Positions 3,330-46,419 of a stretch of DNA of 64,000 bases are shown one piece after another. The stretch is taken from positions 62,001 through 126,000 of IMG/VR virus record IMGVR_UViG_3300021520_000002; one strand, 5' to 3'. The first letter of the stretch is position 1; every line of letters begins with the position of its first letter. The position numbers and the translations under genes were made by a program. The notes beneath the pieces were generated by a model. That model had not been told where the DNA came from. It was given only the letters and a program-made list of their open reading frames with translations, and did not search any database.

Positions 3330-3364
3330 TATCTAATTATATAAATCTATAAAATGGAGGCGCT

Positions 3365-4336
3365 GTGTCTGATTTAAATAGTATGATGGAGATGCTTGAA
3401 GTACCACAAGATATAATTGATGATATAATTGAAACTGAAAAAAGTGCTGAGATTCCTGAAAAACAATTTGAAATTATCATACCCGATATTACACGAGCAT
3501 ATTCTTTATTTGATATTGATAAATTTACAAAAGAATTACAGGAAAAATCTGCCGCTAAAAATCAAGCATATAGAGAATTATTTCAAAATATTAATGCTTA
3601 TGATTTGGCAAACAATTGTATTAGAGATATTGTTTATAAATTATTAAATACACCAGTTGAATCTTTTGCCGATAAATGGCTACCAGTATTATTAAGATCA
3701 ACTTTGGGAAATGCTATACATAATTTTATACAAGACAATTCTAATCAATTTACGGAACGAGAAGTATCAATAAAAATACCATCAAAAAGAGTTTCTGTTA
3801 GATTAGATAATTTAATTGGTCCAAATATTTTAGTCGAGATTAAAAGTTTACCTTATTCAGAATATGAAAAAATAGTTAAATCTTGTAAGCCAAGAATTGC
3901 TGATTTTTATCAAGCAGTAGCTTATAAATATTTCTTAGAAAATTTTCTTGAAGAAGCCAAAAATTCTGGAGAGAAGACAAGAACTCCACCTCCAGCTTTA
4001 AATAATTATGATATTCAACAAATTCAGTTTATTTATGTTGCTCATGATGTTGTAGCAAATGATGTTGAATCACTTGCTGAAATATTAGAGAGAATTAAAC
4101 AACTTAAAAGACTTCTTAATTCTAAATCTAATACATTCTTCTTCATGACAACATTAGCAATTGATGTTACAAATAATATTGCTGATCCATATATTAATTA
4201 TATTAAAAATAAATTAGAGCGTATTAATCATTATTTAGATAGCGGCAAGATTCCACCAAATGATGATGAATTTGTAGATACAGGTAAATGTTTCTTCTGT
4301 CTCTACAAGAAATTATGTAATCAGAATAAGAGATAA
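3365..4336 (+). CDS. Cas4-like PD-(D/E)XK exonuclease with 4Fe-4S cysteines (solo, no CRISPR)
   Basis: N-terminal C-x-R, GNAIH, RLD, EIKS, QAVAY and C-terminal CFFCLYKKLC. Confidence 0.8.
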   Translation: MSDLNSMMEMLEVPQDIIDDIIETEKSAEIPEKQFEIIIPDITRAYSLFDIDKFTKELQEKSAAKNQAYRELFQNINAYDLANNCIRDIVYKLLNTPVESFADKWLPVLLRSTLGNAIHNFIQDNSNQFTEREVSIKIPSKRVSVRLDNLIGPNILVEIKSLPYSEYEKIVKSCKPRIADFYQAVAYKYFLENFLEEAKNSGEKTRTPPPALNNYDIQQIQFIYVAHDVVANDVESLAEILERIKQLKRLLNSKSNTFFFMTTLAIDVTNNIADPYINYIKNKLERINHYLDSGKIPPNDDEFVDTGKCFFCLYKKLCNQNKR

Positions 4337-15389: not shown

Positions 15390-15421
15390 ATCGGCAAGAT
15401 CTGAAAAATGATCTTGCCGAT
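15390..15421. repeat. intergenic palindrome copy 2
   Basis: ATCGGCAAGATCTGAAAAATGATCTTGCCGAT. Confidence 0.95.
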
Positions 15422-15448
15422 GTTCCAAAATTGGAGGCGAAAAATTTT

Positions 15449-17305
15449 ATGATACGGGCACCATTTGTTTTAACTAAATATGATGAAGAGTCACTGAATC
15501 TTCTTCAAGAAAGTAATGGAATAAGTATCGATGAATTTAAACAAAATGAGTGGTTTAAATGTCGAGAGAATCCATTCTATTTTATTTTGAATTATGTTTA
15601 CCTACCAGAAGTTGGTGGGAAATTAAAATACACAAAAGAATATTTACACCCAAAATTTAGAAGAATAATAAAATCAATATATAAAAATCATATGGCAATG
15701 TTAATGGCTTCAAGACAGTTAGGAAAAAGCTCAATTGCCGCTTGTCTACTTGCTTGGGCATTAATCTTTTTTCCAAATAATAGAGTTGTTATTCTAAACT
15801 ATAGAAAAATTGCCGCTCAAGAAAACTTAAAGAAAATAAAGTTCATAATACAAAATTTACCAAGTTGGATGAGGATTCCTTATAGATCTAAAAGTGAAAT
15901 AAAGGAATATGCTGAATTACAAAATGGTTCAAGAATAGACACATTTTATCCTTCATCAACAAGTTCTCCTTCTACATTAGCTCGTTCATTAACAGTTCCA
16001 ATCTTATATGTTGATGAGGTAGCTTTTATTTCTCATATGGAAGAAATTTATGGTTCAGCACAGCAGACACTTTCTAATGCTAGAGAACAAGCTATTAAAA
16101 ATAGTTATCCCTACTTTATTTTTATGACATCAACTCCCAACGGTGTTGAAGGTGATGGAAAATTCTTTTATGATTTTTGGATGAATGCTGTTGAATCTGA
16201 TGATCTTTTTGCTGAAGATCCAGAAACTGGAATGGAAGATTGGATACCAAATACTGATGATGTTCTTAATCAACCAGATAAAAATAGTTTTACAAGAGTT
16301 AAATATCATTGGTCTGAAAATCCAGATAAAACTATAGCATGGTATGAACAACAAAAGAAAGAACTCAACTTTGATCTTAGAAAGATTAATCAGGAATTAG
16401 ATATACTTTTTGTTGGTGGGACAAATTGTATTTTTACCGATGAAGTTTTACAAAAGTTAACATTTTTTCCTAGAGCAAATTATCTTGAACTTTCAAATCA
16501 AGTTCAGTTCGATATGTATGAGGAAATTGATACTCAAGATTATTATTTATTAGGGGTAGATACAGCGAGTTCTATTAAAGGAGCTTTTAATGCTCTTGAA
16601 TTATTTTCATATAGAGATTTTAAACAAGTTGGTGAAGCTAATGTTAGATTGGGGTCATTGACTAAATATGGTGAAACTGTTGATTCATTATTTAGACAAA
16701 TATATAAAACAACACAAAGAATAATTCTTTGTATAGAAAATAATTCTATCGGCAAAGCAGTTATTGAACATCTAATTTATCATATTAAAGATTTTAATTA
16801 TATGCCTTTTATATATAAAGAAAAAGATCCTGATATGGTAGAAAAACATGAATTTGGAATTTCAACAACTGGGAAATCTAAAGAATTAATGGTTTCTCTT
16901 TTTTATGATCATATTAATCAAAATCCACAATGTTTAAAATCCCAAAATTTAATTGCACAATTAGGTACAATTCAAAGATCGAATCGTGGAACAATTAAAG
17001 CTTCGGGTTTTAGTGATATGTTTATGTCTGGAAGTTTTTGTGCATATGTTCGTAATAGAACATTTCTAGATATTTTGCCGTTATTAGGTCAATCAAATAA
17101 ACAAGTACAAGATACATTTTTTAACTCGGTAAAAACTGCTGCTGAAATGATGAATGTTAAATTAATTATTAAAAATTCTTTACAACAAGAAACTGGTTTT
17201 ATGTCTGTTCAAGAAGATTCTTATAGAGATGAAGATGCTAAACACGAAAGTGATACAATATTAGATGAAGATTGGAGAATATATATACCGATCATGACAC
17301 CATAG
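15449..17305 (+). CDS. terL: terminase large subunit (T4 gp17-like)
   Basis: Walker A SRQLGKS, Walker B LYVDEVAF, coupling motif TSTPNG, nuclease LGVDTA, IENNSIG; ATG 15449 after GGAGG (ORF track 15431). Confidence 0.93.
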   Translation: MIRAPFVLTKYDEESLNLLQESNGISIDEFKQNEWFKCRENPFYFILNYVYLPEVGGKLKYTKEYLHPKFRRIIKSIYKNHMAMLMASRQLGKSSIAACLLAWALIFFPNNRVVILNYRKIAAQENLKKIKFIIQNLPSWMRIPYRSKSEIKEYAELQNGSRIDTFYPSSTSSPSTLARSLTVPILYVDEVAFISHMEEIYGSAQQTLSNAREQAIKNSYPYFIFMTSTPNGVEGDGKFFYDFWMNAVESDDLFAEDPETGMEDWIPNTDDVLNQPDKNSFTRVKYHWSENPDKTIAWYEQQKKELNFDLRKINQELDILFVGGTNCIFTDEVLQKLTFFPRANYLELSNQVQFDMYEEIDTQDYYLLGVDTASSIKGAFNALELFSYRDFKQVGEANVRLGSLTKYGETVDSLFRQIYKTTQRIILCIENNSIGKAVIEHLIYHIKDFNYMPFIYKEKDPDMVEKHEFGISTTGKSKELMVSLFYDHINQNPQCLKSQNLIAQLGTIQRSNRGTIKASGFSDMFMSGSFCAYVRNRTFLDILPLLGQSNKQVQDTFFNSVKTAAEMMNVKLIIKNSLQQETGFMSVQEDSYRDEDAKHESDTILDEDWRIYIPIMTP

Positions 17306-22253: not shown

Positions 22254-22288
22254 GATCGGCAAGATCTAGAAATAGAATCTTGCCGATC
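22254..22288. repeat. intergenic palindrome copy 3
   Basis: GATCGGCAAGATCTAGAAATAGAATCTTGCCGATC. Confidence 0.95.
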
Positions 22289-22307
22289 TCCCTCTAGGAG
22301 GCGAAAA

Positions 22308-24038
22308 ATGTTTGATGTTGATTATGATTATGAAGATATAGTTTATGAAGAGGAATATATTCCTAGTGAAAGTCCAATAGGTTCATTACCTGAAGATATG
22401 AATGATTCTAATGCTTATGATCCACAATATATGACTGATGCTGATGCTTACACAGTTAATCCTGAAGATATGACAGATGCTAATGCATATGATTATCTTA
22501 ATGATTCTGAATATCAAAAATTTACACAATATGGAAGTGATGCTGCAAGTGATGTAGGTACATATTTAAAAACTGGAGTCACTTCTGGTGCTCGAAGTAT
22601 TATTGATGCTTTAACATCAAATAAAAATTCAATACCACGTGGAAATTCTTTGTTTACTATTGGTAAACCAGTAGGATTTAATAATATTATAGATCCTCAA
22701 AAAAGACTTAGTAGTTATATTAGAACAAAAATGAGTGTTATTGATCTTATTCCATGTGAATATAGTATGGATTTTACAAAAATGCAAGAAACAGCAAAAG
22801 GACAAAATCCTGTTGGTGGTGGACTTTATAAAATATCATATGATAAAAATATTAAGATATATCAAAAATTACAAAATTATTATGGACTTAACATTTCTGA
22901 TACTAAATCTGGAATAAGATTGTATACAACTGATGATACAACAGCTATTGACAGTTTTAATATTCAATATAAACCTAGTATTTTTCAAGGTCCAGTTGAT
23001 TCTCTTGGAGAATTAACAAGAAATATTAGAGAAATCGGATCATCAGTATTTTCAAATTTTGAACCATCTATGAGAGATTTAGCATCTAAAGGTGGTGGAT
23101 TTATAACAGGAGGTTTAAATAAAGTTTCTCCTAATACTGGTGGTTATAATAAAGCTTTTGGAGAAATAGTTCAAAGTACTTTAGAAATTCTTGTTAAAGG
23201 AAATAGAGTTTCATTTCCTAAAATTTGGCAAAACACATCTCATCAAAGTACAATTTCAACAGTAATTAAATTAGTTTCACCTTATGGATCACCTAAAGCT
23301 ATTTATGAATTTATAATTAAACCATTAACTTATTTAATTTTATTAGCTGCACCTCAAACAACAGATGGTTTTTCTTATGGTGGAGCAATGCCATTAACAA
23401 TAAAAGCGTATGGTATGAATTATACAGTTTTAGGTTCAATTAATAATATAACCTGTCGTAGAGGTGGTAGTGATACAAGTTTTAATGTTTATAGGCAACC
23501 TTTATCAATTGATGTTAGTGTTGATTTTCAAACGTTATTCGATGGATTTGCTGCTTATTTACCTACTGATAATCGGGTATCTACAGAAGAAATAAGTGCA
23601 GCATCAGATCAAATATTAATGGGTCGCAGAGAACCTGAAGTTGAATTATATCAGAAAACAGCAACTTCACCATTAATGACAGTTGGAAAATATCTTGAAT
23701 CTTTAAAACCAATTAAAATAGTTGATGGAAATTTCCAAGTATATGGTAATATGAAAAAACCAGTAAGAGTTAATGCTCCTGGTACTGGTAGTTTAGGAGA
23801 TCTTAATCAAGCTTTAGGTAATATTCAATCTGGATTAGGTGTAGGATTTGATGTGTTTGGTAAAGTTATTGGTGATATGCCTGGTATGTCAAGTCTTGCT
23901 GAATTTACAACAGCAAAAGAATCTGTTACAGAAAATGTTAGTTCAGTTGTTGATTGGATGCAGATTTCAACACAAGCAACTTCTGCAGCTGATGCCTTTA
24001 GAAATAAAGTCACATCTAATTTTCAAACTTTTTGGTAA
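22308..24038 (+). CDS. tail/baseplate-associated structural protein (tube-initiator-like)
   Basis: ATG 22308 after AGGAGG (ORF track 22251 reads through the palindrome); follows the tape measure; FPKIWQN...KLVSPYG...GSINNITCRRG. Confidence 0.55.
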   Translation: MFDVDYDYEDIVYEEEYIPSESPIGSLPEDMNDSNAYDPQYMTDADAYTVNPEDMTDANAYDYLNDSEYQKFTQYGSDAASDVGTYLKTGVTSGARSIIDALTSNKNSIPRGNSLFTIGKPVGFNNIIDPQKRLSSYIRTKMSVIDLIPCEYSMDFTKMQETAKGQNPVGGGLYKISYDKNIKIYQKLQNYYGLNISDTKSGIRLYTTDDTTAIDSFNIQYKPSIFQGPVDSLGELTRNIREIGSSVFSNFEPSMRDLASKGGGFITGGLNKVSPNTGGYNKAFGEIVQSTLEILVKGNRVSFPKIWQNTSHQSTISTVIKLVSPYGSPKAIYEFIIKPLTYLILLAAPQTTDGFSYGGAMPLTIKAYGMNYTVLGSINNITCRRGGSDTSFNVYRQPLSIDVSVDFQTLFDGFAAYLPTDNRVSTEEISAASDQILMGRREPEVELYQKTATSPLMTVGKYLESLKPIKIVDGNFQVYGNMKKPVRVNAPGTGSLGDLNQALGNIQSGLGVGFDVFGKVIGDMPGMSSLAEFTTAKESVTENVSSVVDWMQISTQATSAADAFRNKVTSNFQTFW

Positions 24039-26178: not shown

Positions 26179-26190
26179 AAAAGGAGGCGT

Positions 26191-27078
26191 ATGGTTTTTG
26201 AAACTAAAAAGAGTGGGTCAAATTCATTATTAAAAGCTTTTACATCAAGATATGTTGCTGAAGATTTTTTTGTAAATATAGCTCGAATTGTACTTTACCC
26301 ATCCGAGTTTGGTAATTTCATATCAGATAGGACAAATTCTGTAATTGATTATATGAGAGATTTTTTAAAGAGTTTGTCATTATTGTCTAATAATTTACAG
26401 TTAGCAAATAGTAAAGTTGTTAGAAGCCAAATCACTATTTTAACTTCTTTATTAACAATTCGAGAATCAAGTCCGATTTTATTAACTTACGAAAATGTTA
26501 ATCAACATTTGATGCCTGGACAAGATTTAATAGTTACTAAACTTATTCAAAAATGTGTTGATGAAAAGATTACAGATACTGATGAGTTTCGTAAAACTAC
26601 AGATGAAGTTATTAATACAATTTCATCTTATTATGAAATGATGTCTGCTGCAGATAGTATTACAATGGTTGGTAATCTTTATGATTTGATTAATGAAGGT
26701 AATCTTGTGCCGATGGAGACATTAAAAAGTTATAAAGATATTATTAATGTTGCTTATAATGATTTATCAAAATTACAATCATTAAGTAAAGCAGAATCAG
26801 CGGCAGATTATTTTGTTATTTCAGATGATAAATCTTGTGATGTATTATCTAAAACATTAGTTGATTATGTTGCAAAGGGTTTTTCAGTATTTAAAACTGG
26901 TTTTGATTTATTTGATAAACATATTGATGGAGTTGAGAGTTCATCAGTACACTTAATTGGTGCGCCTTCTAATCATGCAAAAAGTTTATTTACAATTAAT
27001 TTATCATATAGAATGATTAAAAACAATCTTGCTGATTTTGATCCACAAGATTGTATATTATTTGTAACTTTAGAGGAT
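26191..27078 (+). CDS. DnaB/gp41-like replicative helicase, exon 1
   Basis: KTGFDLFD, Walker A-like GAPSNHAKS, FVTLED; ends at the group I 5' splice site. Confidence 0.85.
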
Positions 27079-28251
27079 TAAATATGGTCCTCTTTAAATC
27101 TCGTGAATTCGGTGAATATCCAGAAGATGGACAATACCGAGCCAAGCTTCTATATTAGACTGCTAATCTAGTATAGTTGAAGGTGTAACGACTATCCCGA
27201 AAGGGAGTACACTCAAGCGAGTGGAAGCGCGAGACATCCTAATCTAAATTAAATAAAAATTTTAAATGGAGGACAGGGTTTGGCCACCTTGGTAAACTAC
27301 CTATATAGTTTGCCTTACTCCAGAAAATAATATTTTGTAGGAGATATTATGATAATAAGATATTCAAAGAAATTAGAATCAGAAGTATATAAAATGACGC
27401 CAGAAGAAAAGCTTGAAAAATTGGTGTATTTTTATATTAATGGAATGTCTTTAGATCATTGTAGTTGGACATTTACTTGTGATAAAGATTTAATTATTTC
27501 TGCTTTAAAATATAAAGATGTATTTGAACATAAAATTTGTAGTAAATGTAAAATTTTAAAATCTTTTGATGAATTTTATATGAATGAAAGTATGGGTAAG
27601 GAAACAAATCGATCTGGTGTTTCTTGTCAATGTCGAGAATGTGTTAGTAAAAATGGTAAAAATTATTTTAAGAATAATAGAGATCATAAAAGAAAATATG
27701 ATAAAGAATATAAAAGACAACCTCATGTATTAGAACAAAGATTAGAATATCAAAAAAAATATTTTAAAGATCCAATAAATTTAAAGAAAAGTGCACAAAG
27801 AGCGAATAAAATATATCATAGTGATATTAAAAAAAGATTACATACAATAGTTTCTGTTTATATTAATAAATGTTTATTTGGTGGTAAAAAGGGAATTTCA
27901 ATAAATAAAATTCTTGGATATACTATGGATGATCTTAAAATACATCTTGAAAAACAATTTGATAATAATATGACTTGGATTAATTATGGATTTTATTGGG
28001 AAATTGATCATATTATTCCAGTTAGTAATTTTACATTTATTTCATATGAAGATGAAGCTTTTAAGAAATGTTGGTCATTGGAAAATTTACAACCACTTGA
28101 AAAAACAATAAATAGAATAAAAAGTAATAAATTGAACTTTGTAGTGATTTAAAAATTAGATTAGGATGAAGAGATAGTCTATTCTCATAGGCAACTATGA
28201 GCTGCAGATAATGCTGCGAATAAGAAGTAGCGATTCTTATTGAATAAAAAG
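27079..28251 (+). mobile_element. group I self-splicing intron (1173 nt) with HNH ORF in P8
   Basis: P1 AGAGGAT/GTCCTCT with U.G at the splice site; P7 GACTAT/ATAGTC; P8 CATCCTAATCTAA/TTAGATTAGGATG brackets the ORF; terminal G 28251; P10 TAAATAT/ATATTTA; splicing restores frame (VTLED|DIYKLVRRF). Confidence 0.9.
27349..28152 (+). CDS. intron-encoded HNH homing endonuclease
   Basis: CSKC and CREC zinc motifs; WEIDHIIP...NLQPLEKTINRIKSNK. Confidence 0.9.
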   Translation: MIIRYSKKLESEVYKMTPEEKLEKLVYFYINGMSLDHCSWTFTCDKDLIISALKYKDVFEHKICSKCKILKSFDEFYMNESMGKETNRSGVSCQCRECVSKNGKNYFKNNRDHKRKYDKEYKRQPHVLEQRLEYQKKYFKDPINLKKSAQRANKIYHSDIKKRLHTIVSVYINKCLFGGKKGISINKILGYTMDDLKIHLEKQFDNNMTWINYGFYWEIDHIIPVSNFTFISYEDEAFKKCWSLENLQPLEKTINRIKSNKLNFVVI

Positions 28252-35372: not shown

Positions 35373-35406
35373 ATCGGCAAGATCTAAATTAATAGATCTT
35401 GCCGAT
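35373..35406. repeat. intergenic palindrome copy 5
   Basis: ATCGGCAAGATCTAAATTAATAGATCTTGCCGAT. Confidence 0.95.
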
Positions 35407-35648: not shown

Positions 35649-35673
35649 ACAAAGAAAATGGAGGCGTAAATAA

Positions 35674-36570
35674 ATGGCATTAAGTGAATTTTTAAAAGCG
35701 ATGGAAATAGTTAGTAATATTAAGAAACAAGAAGTTCCACTTCCAATAGCCAGAAAGAGTGCTGTCGTAAGTCCTCTTAGGGTTGGAGACGATTTATCAT
35801 TAAGATCATCATTAACTTCACCTGTTAACTATGATAGACAAATGACTAAATTGATATTTGATTTAACAGAATTTATGGCCGCTGAAGGTCAACCATTAAT
35901 TAAAGAAAATTTTGAGTTCTTTTGTAAAACAACATCTAATATTGATAAGATTTGTTTGATTTGGGGTTTATATAAAACTACATACGAATCATTAGGAAAG
36001 AGAACTTTTAAGTGTGATAAAGAGAATTGTAAAGCTGAATTTAAACAGGATGTATTATTAGACAGTTTAGTTAAAGAAGATACTTTCTGTCCTTGGGAAG
36101 AGGAAGAACTTCCTTTTCATGAATTTATTTGGGAGATAGTTGTTCCTTATGAACAGTTTGAATTTATATTTGAAAGTAGAATACCATCAATCAGTGATAA
36201 TAACAGAGTATTAAGTAATTTATCTATTGAGTCAGTTCAGGAAAATTTTCAGACAGGTGGTAATTTATTTAGTAGAAGTGAACAAATGACACTTCTTAAT
36301 AGATCAGTTGCAATTAAGAGTGTAGTTAATCCAAATAATGTTCCTAAAACAGAAAATATGCAAGAGTTATTAATTGCTTTCAGAAAATATGTTCCTCATA
36401 TAGTTTCTGAAAAATTCTTTATTGAATACAATAAGAAATTTGATAAATATTATCCAAAATTTTATACAATGATACCTTGTCCTCAGTGTGGTAATGAAAT
36501 AAAATTCACGGTAGACCTGGAATCAGAATTTTTTCGGAGAAGCTTATTTGGTGGAGGGGAGGGCAGCTAA
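35674..36570 (+). CDS. baseplate hub assembly / tail chaperone (T4 gp26-like)
   Basis: IDKICLIWGLYKTTYE, CxxxxC, RIPSISD, C-terminal CPQCG...EFF. Confidence 0.7.
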   Translation: MALSEFLKAMEIVSNIKKQEVPLPIARKSAVVSPLRVGDDLSLRSSLTSPVNYDRQMTKLIFDLTEFMAAEGQPLIKENFEFFCKTTSNIDKICLIWGLYKTTYESLGKRTFKCDKENCKAEFKQDVLLDSLVKEDTFCPWEEEELPFHEFIWEIVVPYEQFEFIFESRIPSISDNNRVLSNLSIESVQENFQTGGNLFSRSEQMTLLNRSVAIKSVVNPNNVPKTENMQELLIAFRKYVPHIVSEKFFIEYNKKFDKYYPKFYTMIPCPQCGNEIKFTVDLESEFFRRSLFGGGEGS

Positions 36571-44259: not shown

Positions 44260-44297
44260 AAATCGGCAAGATCTATATTACAAGATCTTGCCGATTT
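44260..44297. repeat. intergenic palindrome copy 6
   Basis: AAATCGGCAAGATCTATATTACAAGATCTTGCCGATTT. Confidence 0.95.
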
Positions 44298-44322: not shown

Positions 44323-45132
44323 ATGGCTGATGCAACTTCTATTATAAGTAGGCTTGCAACCAGATTTAATAATGCTATTAAAGACCGTGACAAGCCAGAT
44401 TTTTTAACTCGTGATATCGGTGGTCAATGGAGAACAAATCAACCTTACATCTCAGGATATTTTCAGTTAGTATTTGGATTGCCACAGATTCTTTTTGATG
44501 GTGCTGATAATGCAGCTGTTGCCGCTAGATGGTTACATAGTACTTGTGAAGGGTTTACACCTCATACACAAAGTATTACAAAAATAGATATCATGGGACA
44601 AGGTCAGATTGGTTCTTCATATATTGCCAATATGATAACTACAAGAGAATTTTCTACAACTTTTAGGGAGTATCAGAACTTACCAATGTTAAATATTATT
44701 AAACGTTGGAATCCTTTTGATCCTTTTACTGGTGTAAGTGCTCTTCAAGGAAATCAATTTATTCCTATCAATTATAAAGGCTGGTGTGCAGTCATTCAGA
44801 CTAAACCAGTTAAGTCTCAGAATCAGGATATTTCTGTTGCTGATATAGAAGAGTGTTATATTTATCAAGGTGTTTTTCCAACAAATCTTCCTGTTGATGC
44901 TTTTGCATCAGATATTACAGCGAATGATACATCCCAATTATCTATAACTTGGAGTTTTGATGGTGCGCCACTCACATCTGCTGAGACTGGTGTTGCAGAT
45001 AAATGTGTAAGTTTACTTAAAGATCTTAGATATATGGGTAGTGCAGATAGTACATTTGAACGTTATCTTTCTCATGGACAGTCATTAAGTCCTTGGGGAT
45101 CTAATAGCGGTCAAGTCGGTACAGTTGTCTAA
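44323..45132 (+). CDS. tail tube protein
   Basis: Follows the sheath gene; FSTTFREY, GVFPTNLP, LSITWSFDG. Confidence 0.8.
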   Translation: MADATSIISRLATRFNNAIKDRDKPDFLTRDIGGQWRTNQPYISGYFQLVFGLPQILFDGADNAAVAARWLHSTCEGFTPHTQSITKIDIMGQGQIGSSYIANMITTREFSTTFREYQNLPMLNIIKRWNPFDPFTGVSALQGNQFIPINYKGWCAVIQTKPVKSQNQDISVADIEECYIYQGVFPTNLPVDAFASDITANDTSQLSITWSFDGAPLTSAETGVADKCVSLLKDLRYMGSADSTFERYLSHGQSLSPWGSNSGQVGTVV

Positions 45133-45137
45133 AATTT

Positions 45138-45226
45138 GAGAGCATATTTTTGCTGTGTCTACGCCTCCCAGCAAACTCCTTCGCTCTCTTCCCCCGGACC
45201 TCTCCTTCGTCGGAGAGGTCCTTTTT
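45138..45226 (+). ncRNA. candidate 3'UTR structured RNA exposing an anti-RBS loop (UACGCCUCC)
   Basis: Nested stems GAGAGC/GCTCTC and TTTGCTG/CAGCAAA with loop TGTCTACGCCTCC, followed by a terminator. Confidence 0.4.
45196..45226 (+). terminator. intrinsic terminator at the strand switch
   Basis: GGACCTCTCC-ttcgtc-GGAGAGGTCC-TTTTT. Confidence 0.85.
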
Positions 45227-45539
45227 ACCGCAAATCTTTTGTGGTCTTATTTTCTTTATAATATTTGATCATATAATAAATTCTATAAGGTTGTAAACTC
45301 ATTAAAATACACAATATAGCTCCAAGAGGATGTTTTTTAAATCCAGCAATATTAGCATTTAATTCTCTTTTCCACACAATAATTTCTTTATCATTAACAT
45401 GATATGTTTCATGTTCAATTAAAAAATTTTGTACACATTTTGGTAGATCTCTTCTGATAGAAATATTTCCATCTAGATTTGAATTACCAAATTTTGGATA
45501 CAACTCTGATTTGGTTTTGAAATTAATTTTTATTTCCAT
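45225..45539 (-). CDS. small zincin-like (HExxH) protein
   Basis: FLIEHETYH...ELNAN; AGGAG RBS. Confidence 0.55.
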   Translation of the reverse strand: MEIKINFKTKSELYPKFGNSNLDGNISIRRDLPKCVQNFLIEHETYHVNDKEIIVWKRELNANIAGFKKHPLGAILCILMSLQPYRIYYMIKYYKENKTTKDLR

Positions 45540-45559
45540 TGAATTCTCCTAAAAAGAAA

Positions 45560-45598
45560 TTGGGTGACCCGAAGGTCACCCTTTGTTTATGCAATTTG
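45560..45598 (-). terminator. cUUCGg-loop terminator, 39-bp direct repeat copy A
   Basis: Minus strand GGGTGACC-TTCG-GGTCACCC then T-rich; repeated at 46850..46888 with one mismatch. Confidence 0.85.
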
Positions 45599-46183
45599 TA
45601 CATCTACTTTTTCTTCTAAAGGTTGTATTCCTTCCTTCAAAAGTTCTTCATCTGTCCATTTTTTACCAGAATCAATACATTTTACTTTAATTTTACCAAG
45701 ATAATATGGAAGATCTGCTTTTCTATTTTTCTTGGCGCACCATTGTTTTCCAAACTCTTCATCATTGAATGGAATCAGATCATCAATTCTCATCTCATAT
45801 GGAGGAGCGCCAGCGAAACATCCAGAATCCTGGAACAGACAGAATCGTTCAATAAAACCATCCTTGTCGACAAATATGTCTGATCCACCAAAGATTCCAT
45901 ATGGATAGAAATATCCACAATCTTTTAAAAAATCTTTAATAATCATATCTTCTGGATCAATTGTATCATCCAGAGTTAAAATTTTTCCATCTTTATTAAA
46001 ATATGAAGATGGAACATCTTTTTCAAATTCGATAACTATTTTCAGAAATTTTTGGTTTTGATATGTTTCAAAATCGAATTTTTCTTCTTTATTTATTTTT
46101 GTTTGTACAGCATCAATAACTTTACCATTTCCCAATTCTGGGTGAACTATTTTAACTCCTTTAAAAACATCTATAGCTTTCAT
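45587..46183 (-). CDS. hypothetical protein
   Basis: AAGGAGG RBS; 198 aa. Confidence 0.7.
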   Translation of the reverse strand: MKAIDVFKGVKIVHPELGNGKVIDAVQTKINKEEKFDFETYQNQKFLKIVIEFEKDVPSSYFNKDGKILTLDDTIDPEDMIIKDFLKDCGYFYPYGIFGGSDIFVDKDGFIERFCLFQDSGCFAGAPPYEMRIDDLIPFNDEEFGKQWCAKKNRKADLPYYLGKIKVKCIDSGKKWTDEELLKEGIQPLEEKVDVQIA

Positions 46184-46419
46184 AACTCCTCCTTAAATTC
46201 TCATATTAGCAGCAATACATGTTCCTGGTTTCTCTCGCTGAATGAATACAACACACCAATGTAATCTTTTTGCTTCTTTAAAAGCTTTAATAAAACCATC
46301 AAATGAAAATTCAAAATCTTGACATATATCATTGTATCCGAATACTTTATACATTTTTTCTCCTCCTTTCAATTTTCACATTTACGACATTCTTCGAGCT
46401 TCATTTTTTCTCCTTGAAT

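Follow-up and report, generated by a model that had tools for sequence, protein, structure and literature searches.

A conserved RNA hairpin with an anti-Shine-Dalgarno-like loop downstream of the tail-tube gene of an uncultured 286-kb phage

Immediately downstream of the tail-tube gene of an uncultured phage lies a conserved RNA hairpin with a loop sequence, CGCCUCC, that is the exact complement of an unusual ribosome-binding sequence, GGAGGCG, found on the same few, putatively low-copy, genes in related phages. The tail-tube message may therefore damp translation of these genes, although this role is inferred from sequence comparison and is considered about as likely as not. The DNA analyzed (the window) is a 64,000-nucleotide stretch corresponding to bases 62001-126000 of IMG/VR record IMGVR_UViG_3300021520_000002 (here G000), a 285,572-bp virus contig of 29% GC that is about 95% complete and encodes T4-like structural and replication genes together with pieces of a multisubunit RNA polymerase. 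Within the window the 269-aa tail-tube ORF (44323-45132, + strand, stop codon at 45130-45132), which had 166 homologues at E <= 1e-10 and sits next to the sheath gene, ends 5 nt before a nested hairpin at 45138-45188 and converges with a gene on the opposite strand. The outer stem is formed by GAGAGC (45138-45143) and GCTCTC (45183-45188) and the inner stem by TTTGCTG (45149-45155) and CAGCAAA (45169-45175), presenting UGUCUACGCCUCC within a 13-nt apical loop, TGTCTACGCCTCC (45156-45168). The last seven bases of this loop, CGCCTCC (45162-45168), form with TA at 45160-45161 the 9-mer TACGCCTCC. A 7-nt C/T-rich spacer separates the hairpin from an intrinsic terminator at 45196-45226, identified by a terminator scan and consisting of a 10-bp stem with seven GC pairs and a 6-nt loop (45196-45221) followed by T5 (45222-45226). 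RNA folding of the 98-nt stretch gave -36 kcal/mol (z = -6.6 against dinucleotide-preserving shuffles) with the loop unpaired in both the minimum free energy and centroid structures. A covariance-model search of 44500-45900 against Rfam 15, with E up to 10, gave no match overlapping 45133-45230, a blastn search of the tube gene and element against 50,697 phage records gave no match, and literature searches found no description of this element.

A preliminary description made from the sequence alone had claimed that the 9-mer at 45160-45168 is complementary to the ribosome-binding sites (RBS) of UvsX, helicase and gp26-like genes, with 7-nt matches at three more genes, and this observation is confirmed at the sequence and coordinates given. 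The complement, GGAGGCGTA, occurs three times on the + strand of the window, at 527, 26183 and 35660, each copy lying 3-13 nt before a start codon, and once on the - strand, which is the loop itself, giving four matches against 0.05 expected. A reading of the - strand copy as a genuine RBS was rejected, as the nearest ATG is 18 nt away and opens a frame of only 14 codons. The three further GGAGGCG matches at 3356, 15433 and 22297 (genome coordinates 65356, 77433 and 84297) are also each at an RBS. In the whole genome there are nine copies of the 9-mer, eight of them at an RBS, against none for the reversed control, and GGAGGCG lies at 16 RBS in total. Among 226 GGAGG occurrences, CGTA is the second most common following 4-mer, at nine against about 0.6 expected from base composition. 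Chance occurrence of CCUCC in an ordinary GC-rich 3' hairpin, although the SD and anti-SD cores are short and common, is very unlikely given these figures and the conservation described below. Adjacent CTCCT and CTTCCCCC tracts, which had also been described as anti-SD-like, exist but are not conserved in relatives.

To determine whether the hairpin is conserved, relatives were gathered by a tail-tube protein search, which brought in four IMG/VR contigs and 64 metagenome loci at 53-100% identity. In 33 distinct sequences, associated with tube proteins of identity down to 53%, the space between the tube stop codon and a terminator holds a hairpin with GCCTCC in its apical loop in essentially all versions, and a terminator follows the hairpin in all relatives. 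The stems differ markedly between clades, for example TTTGCTG/CAGCAAA, AAAGATTTG/CAAATCTTT, ATCATTG/CAATGTT and AACATCG/CGGTGT. Alignment of whole elements with MAFFT followed by RNAalifold predicted no structure, because variable loop and internal-loop lengths misalign the arms, and this was replaced with an analysis anchored on the motif. Among 21 distinct inner hairpins GCCUCC is invariant and the last seven loop bases are CGCCUCC in 20, with one UGCCUCC, and the motif always abuts the 3' arm of the stem. Standard pairs are formed at 88% of inner-stem positions against 57% when 3' arms are shuffled (0 of 2000 shuffles reaching the observed value), with four to six pair types at stem positions 2-6. 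A model-fitted alignment of the main clade gave a covariation score of 0.36 against 0.17 (0 of 500), with four of seven pairs changed on both sides. These data indicate that the hairpin is a structured, conserved RNA element maintained by compensatory changes. On a tube-protein tree it occurs in at least four deep lineages, and starred branches of that tree force at least two gains or losses. A pattern scan of IMG/VR for GAGAGC..GCCTCCC..GCTCTC returned at least 119 loci, of which only the two relatives already identified were true, the remainder being chance matches in GC-rich contigs. A covariance model built from the subset with 9-nt loops, and so biased to the main clade, found the copy in the window only at E = 0.05 and missed the second clade (clade B), and was not used to claim absence. 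In the largest clade (metagenome loci L151-L171 and L204-L206) an additional small hairpin, for example GCCTGTCGATGTGACGGGC, lies 10-40 nt after the tube stop and precedes the anti-SD hairpin, but is absent from the window. The sequence TTTTTACCGCAAA directly after the terminator (window 45222-45234) is conserved at the same position in many relatives, including loci L146, L147, L150, L155, L157, L160 and L204, although the downstream genes differ, and in the window it overlaps the stop of the - strand ORF 45225-45539.

The element is transcribed with the tube gene. Two metatranscriptome runs from a lake sample that also holds the phage DNA contain contigs identical to the window which cover the sheath gene, the tube gene and the hairpin and end at 45194 and 45195, just before the terminator. 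Depth is zero from 45258 to 46200, over the convergent genes, which serves as an internal control against DNA carry-over. As these are assembled contigs that carry neither strand nor transcript ends, they cannot reveal a separate small RNA, and the discrete species of approximately 90 nt proposed in the preliminary description remains hypothetical. In the relatives G001 and G002 the - strand genes have their own terminator before they reach the element, and so the element belongs to the + strand tube transcript. This, together with termination of the RNA contigs, also counts against the possibility that the element acts solely in cis on termination or read-through at the convergent gene junction, either through alternative pairing with the SD-like 3' arm of the terminator or as a terminator for the opposite strand. 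The terminator 5' arms in the window (45196-45221) and in relatives are consistently C/U-rich (CCUCUCC, CCCUCCC) and the 3' arms SD-like (GGAGAGG, GGGAGG), so that the loop could compete for these arms, the whole 3'UTR up to the terminator loop is G-poor, and in the window the - strand reading of the hairpin is followed by AAAUUUU. However, complementarity of loop to terminator is only partial in the window and termination control would require neither an invariant CGCCUCC nor matching RBS, and this interpretation is considered improbable.

The genes carrying the complementary RBS were next examined. GGAGGCGTA at 527-535 is the RBS of the UvsX-like recombinase (545-1948), with a predicted loop duplex of -17.6 kcal/mol, and the orthologous RBS keeps GGAGGC in G001, G002, G005 and locus L158. 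GGAGGCG at 3356-3362 precedes a 323-aa gene of unknown function (GTG start at 3365; orf323) and is kept in G001, G002, G005 and also in G004. GGAGGCG at 15433-15439 is the RBS of the large terminase (15449-17305; Pfam Terminase_6N match) and is kept in G001, G002 and G005, whereas G004 has AAGGAG. GGAGGCG at 22297-22303 precedes a 576-aa gene of unknown function (22308-24038) and is kept in the G001 orthologue. GGAGGCGTA at 26183-26191 is the RBS of a 296-aa helicase-like gene (26191-27081) with a weak PHROG match to DnaB-like helicase, the orthologous sites reading GGAGGCG in G001, GGAGGCA in G002 and GGAGGTG in G005. GGAGGCGTA at 35660-35668 is the RBS of a gene (35674-36570) encoding a 298-aa protein with predicted similarity to T4-type gp26, and is the most consistently complementary site across lineages. 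An AlphaFold model of this protein (pLDDT 85) matched BFVD entries named 'Baseplate hub assembly protein, T4-like' and 'Gp26 base plate hub subunit' at E 1e-7 to 1e-5 and TM 0.45-0.6, although there was no Pfam match and no PDB match by sequence or by fold. Four invariant cysteines (C114, C119, C269 and C272) suggest a zinc site. In G000 GGAGGCG also lies at the RBS of a clamp-loader AAA protein, several unknowns and RNA polymerase beta-like and beta'-like pieces, the last two being genes outside the window with Rpb2 domain 6 and Rpb1 domain 1 matches at 222157-224127 and 240184-241374 of the G000 contig, both with GGAGGCGTA RBS. These gene classes fit the proposal in the preliminary description that replication and low-copy assembly genes are affected. 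In contrast the MCP, sheath and tube genes, presumed to be abundantly expressed, use AAGGAGA.

Predicted duplexes of the loop with the GGAGGCGUA sites are -17.6 to -19 kcal/mol, against a median of -7.8 over 411 gene starts, and energies of -15 to -19 kcal/mol were obtained for the GGAGGC(G) sites. MCP, sheath and tube RBS give only -6 to -8 kcal/mol, and at -6.2 kcal/mol for the tube gene itself autoregulation through the loop is unlikely. A canonical 16S tail gives -9 to -15 kcal/mol on the GGAGGCGUA sites. The C following GGAGG faces A1534 of a canonical 16S tail, and so GGAGGCG is not explained by better ribosome pairing unless the host ribosome has an unusual 3' tail (CGCCUCC, that is A1534G). 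GGAGGCG would then simply be the optimal Shine-Dalgarno sequence and the loop a general mimic of the anti-SD, acting as a sponge for strong SDs or a decoy for an enzyme attacking the 16S tail rather than as a gene-specific regulator. CGCCUCC differs from the canonical CACCUCC by one base, and GGAGGTG is rare at RBS in this phage (2 of 115). A scan of one genome for each of about 185,000 prokaryote species for a 16S 3' end with CGCCTCC found seven, of which four are Peribacteria and three of these have the tail GGAACGCCUCCUUACC. In the Peribacteria / Peregrinibacteria genomes L233, L235, L236 and L237 the tail reads GGAACGCCUCCUUACC (GGAUCGCCUCCUAUU in L237) instead of GGAUCACCUCCUU, a rare natural variant next to the anti-SD. 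The GGAACGCCUCCUUACC tail would match ACGCCUCC in the loops of this phage and G001 and the preference for T after GGAGGCG. However, these loci have about 60% GC against 29% for the phage, the phage genes taken to be most highly expressed do not use GGAGGC, C is not generally favoured after GGAGG (20 of 115) but forms a discrete CG class, and G004 would need yet another tail, UGCCUCC. This alternative is considered unlikely.

Covariation of loop and RBS across related phages had been proposed as a check of the idea, and the association was examined in seven contigs. Among GGAGG RBS, CG follows in 33 of 203 in the four element-bearing genomes (G000, G001, G002 and G005) against 4 of 126 in three relatives without the hairpin (G003, G004 and G006; Fisher's test 1.3e-4), although the genomes are few and related and such tests are not phylogenetically independent. 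In G005, whose tube protein is only 57% identical, all four GGAGGCG genes that have a G000 orthologue belong to the G000 set (UvsX, orf323, large terminase and gp26-like), where about 4% per gene would be expected. GGAGGC(G) sits on the same orthologues in two deep clades (A and B). The gp26-like RBS reads GGAGGC in 17 of 17 element-bearing loci, followed by G in most, while in the element-less G003, G004 and G006 only 1 of 12 orthologous RBS has GGAGGC, namely orf323 of G004. UvsX and large terminase of G004 have AAGGAG and its gp26-like gene has GGAGGG. Flank covariation is partial. The UvsX RBS reads GGAGGCG-TA in G000, -G in G002 and -AA in G005 where the loops read UA-, C- and UU-CGCCUCC, and T follows GGAGGCG in 17 of 26 sites where the loop has A before CGCCUCC against 3 of 19 elsewhere, but loops with C at that position are not matched by G at most sites. 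The conserved complementarity is therefore 6-7 nt, GGAGGC(G) with (C)GCCUCC, and the TA extension is specific to this phage and its nearest relative, so that importance of the full 9-nt match emphasized in the preliminary description is not supported by the evidence so far. This short complementarity contains the generic SD / anti-SD core, the specific information residing mainly in the CG extension.

Lineages scored as lacking the motif still carry a pyrimidine-loop hairpin after the tube gene, and in two of these the gp26-like RBS has changed to match. In loci L186 and L203 the loop is ACCUCCUC, and the best target among 18 genes is the gp26-like RBS GAGGAGG (-14.0 against -8.9 kcal/mol for the next), although in L186 the gp26-like gene has the only GGAGG RBS in the locus and any anti-SD-like loop would select it. 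In locus L183 the loop is UUUUUCUCUCUUUUUU and the best target among 26 genes is the gp26-like RBS AAAGAGGGAA, a 10-bp duplex at -16.2 kcal/mol, but the next best is -15.2 and this case is weak. Locus L182 has a UGCCUCC loop but holds no GGAGGC RBS and is uninformative. The model is weakened by G004 (IMGVR_UViG_3300044712_000810; loci L240-L255), a complete 315-kb relative with a plain terminator after its tube gene. About 24 of 117 of its GGAGG RBS read GGAGGCA, followed by A or T, for example at 152-181 kb, and many are preceded by a TATAGAAATA-like motif. A search of this genome found no hairpin or other intergenic UGCCUCC partner for this class, which the model does not explain. A discrete extended-SD class can therefore arise in this phage group without a visible matching loop.

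The G004 data are compatible with an alternative in which the hairpin is a protein-binding site or a stability and processing element of the tube mRNA, such as an operator for a phage RNA-binding protein, an RNase III-type processing site or a 3' stabilizer, its complementarity to the RBS motif being coincidental. An invariant loop on a variable stem is also typical of protein-recognized hairpins, the nested stem with internal loops resembles phage RNase III sites in outline, and the element is always placed just before a terminator. This alternative does not explain why GGAGGC(G) is kept on the same orthologous RBS only where the loop exists or why the gp26-like RBS changes along with altered loops, no candidate protein was identified, and it is considered unlikely.

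The interpretation favoured here, held at about even odds, is that the 3'UTR of the late, abundant tail-tube mRNA, or a fragment of it, displays CGCCUCC stacked on the 3' side of the hairpin loop and pairs with the Shine-Dalgarno region GGAGGC(G) of a small conserved set of phage mRNAs. The core set would be the gp26-like baseplate hub assembly protein, the UvsX recombinase, the large terminase and the 323-aa protein, extended in this genome to RNA polymerase beta and beta' pieces, the clamp loader and a helicase-like gene. Pairing would occlude the RBS, so that translation of these low-copy enzymes and assembly factors would fall as tube mRNA accumulates, whilst capsid, sheath and tube mRNAs would escape. 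The analysis establishes the structure and its conservation, the complementarity and its conservation on orthologous genes, and transcription of the element, whereas pairing in vivo, repression as the direction of the effect, and whether the active species is the whole mRNA or a processed 3' fragment are inferred. The preliminary observation is thus confirmed and considerably strengthened, and its interpretation as a phage anti-Shine-Dalgarno sRNA is supported in part.

By mechanism the closest systems are the C-rich-loop sRNAs of Gram-positive bacteria, namely S. aureus RNAIII, Rsa RNAs and IsrR, B. subtilis RoxS/RsaE, Listeria LhrC and M. tuberculosis 6C (PMC9410917, PMC5419742, PMC4132741, PMC6486639), in which a UCCC- or CCUCC-like loop pairs through a short GC-rich seed of 6-9 nt with the G-rich Shine-Dalgarno region of several mRNAs and blocks initiation, Hfq not being obviously needed. 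The present element differs in being encoded by a lytic jumbo phage, embedded in the 3'UTR of a structural-gene mRNA, with a single loop and predicted targets among the phage's own genes, and no sequence or Rfam relationship was found to these or to the other systems compared below. By position it resembles the 3'UTR-derived sRNAs of enterobacteria (CpxQ, SroC, DapZ type), which share a terminator with the upstream mRNA and have the seed between stop codon and terminator, but those RNAs are Hfq-dependent, use linear seeds and are released by RNase E or made from an internal promoter, and no processing site or internal promoter could be shown here. The proposed logic is that of T4 RegA and RegB, which act late at the RBS of a subset of the phage's own early mRNAs to re-programme translation, although these are proteins, a repressor and a GGAG-cutting endonuclease, whereas the proposed effector here is an RNA loop. 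Phage antisense regulators that mask an RBS (P1/P7 c4 RNA, P22 sar, lambda OOP) likewise pair with an RBS region but are cis-antisense or act on a single operon in temperate phages, whereas this element would act in trans on many dispersed genes of a virulent-type jumbo phage.

A broader reading, which is possible but tentative, is that a widespread clade of uncultured jumbo myoviruses uses the tail-tube 3'UTR as a built-in regulatory RNA which, together with a private extended Shine-Dalgarno code, would define a conserved post-transcriptional regulon of baseplate hub assembly factor, recombinase, terminase and polymerase subunits. This would couple the amount of a structural mRNA to translation of low-copy assembly and replication genes, with loop and RBS co-evolving between lineages (CGCCUCC with GGAGGCG, CCUCCUC with GAGGAGG and CUCUCUUU with AAAGAGGG). 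Regulatory RNAs of lytic phages, and of jumbo phages in particular, are almost unexplored, and to our knowledge no phage structural-gene 3'UTR has been described that controls a dispersed set of the phage's own genes through a private Shine-Dalgarno extension. If correct, the model would provide a simple RNA-only mechanism for late translational re-programming and for setting assembly stoichiometry (many tube subunits per baseplate hub), a new RNA motif for annotating metagenomic phages, and a compact, orthogonal loop and RBS pair of possible use in synthetic biology. Even if the trans model fails, the element is a well-supported new conserved RNA structure with an invariant loop that would still need an explanation.

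A second, repeated hairpin was observed between the sheath and tube genes at 44263-44295 of the window. This palindromic intergenic element, ATCGGCAAGATCT-N7-AGATCTTGCCGAT, usually lies 15-35 nt upstream of a gene start and recurs at about 15399-15420, 22264-22286, 35382-35405 and elsewhere. It could be a shared terminator or processing hairpin, or a palindromic operator or promoter element. There are 79 half-sites (TCTTGCCGA) in G000, 22 in G001 and 18 in G002, but 4 in G004 and none in G005, G003 and G006.
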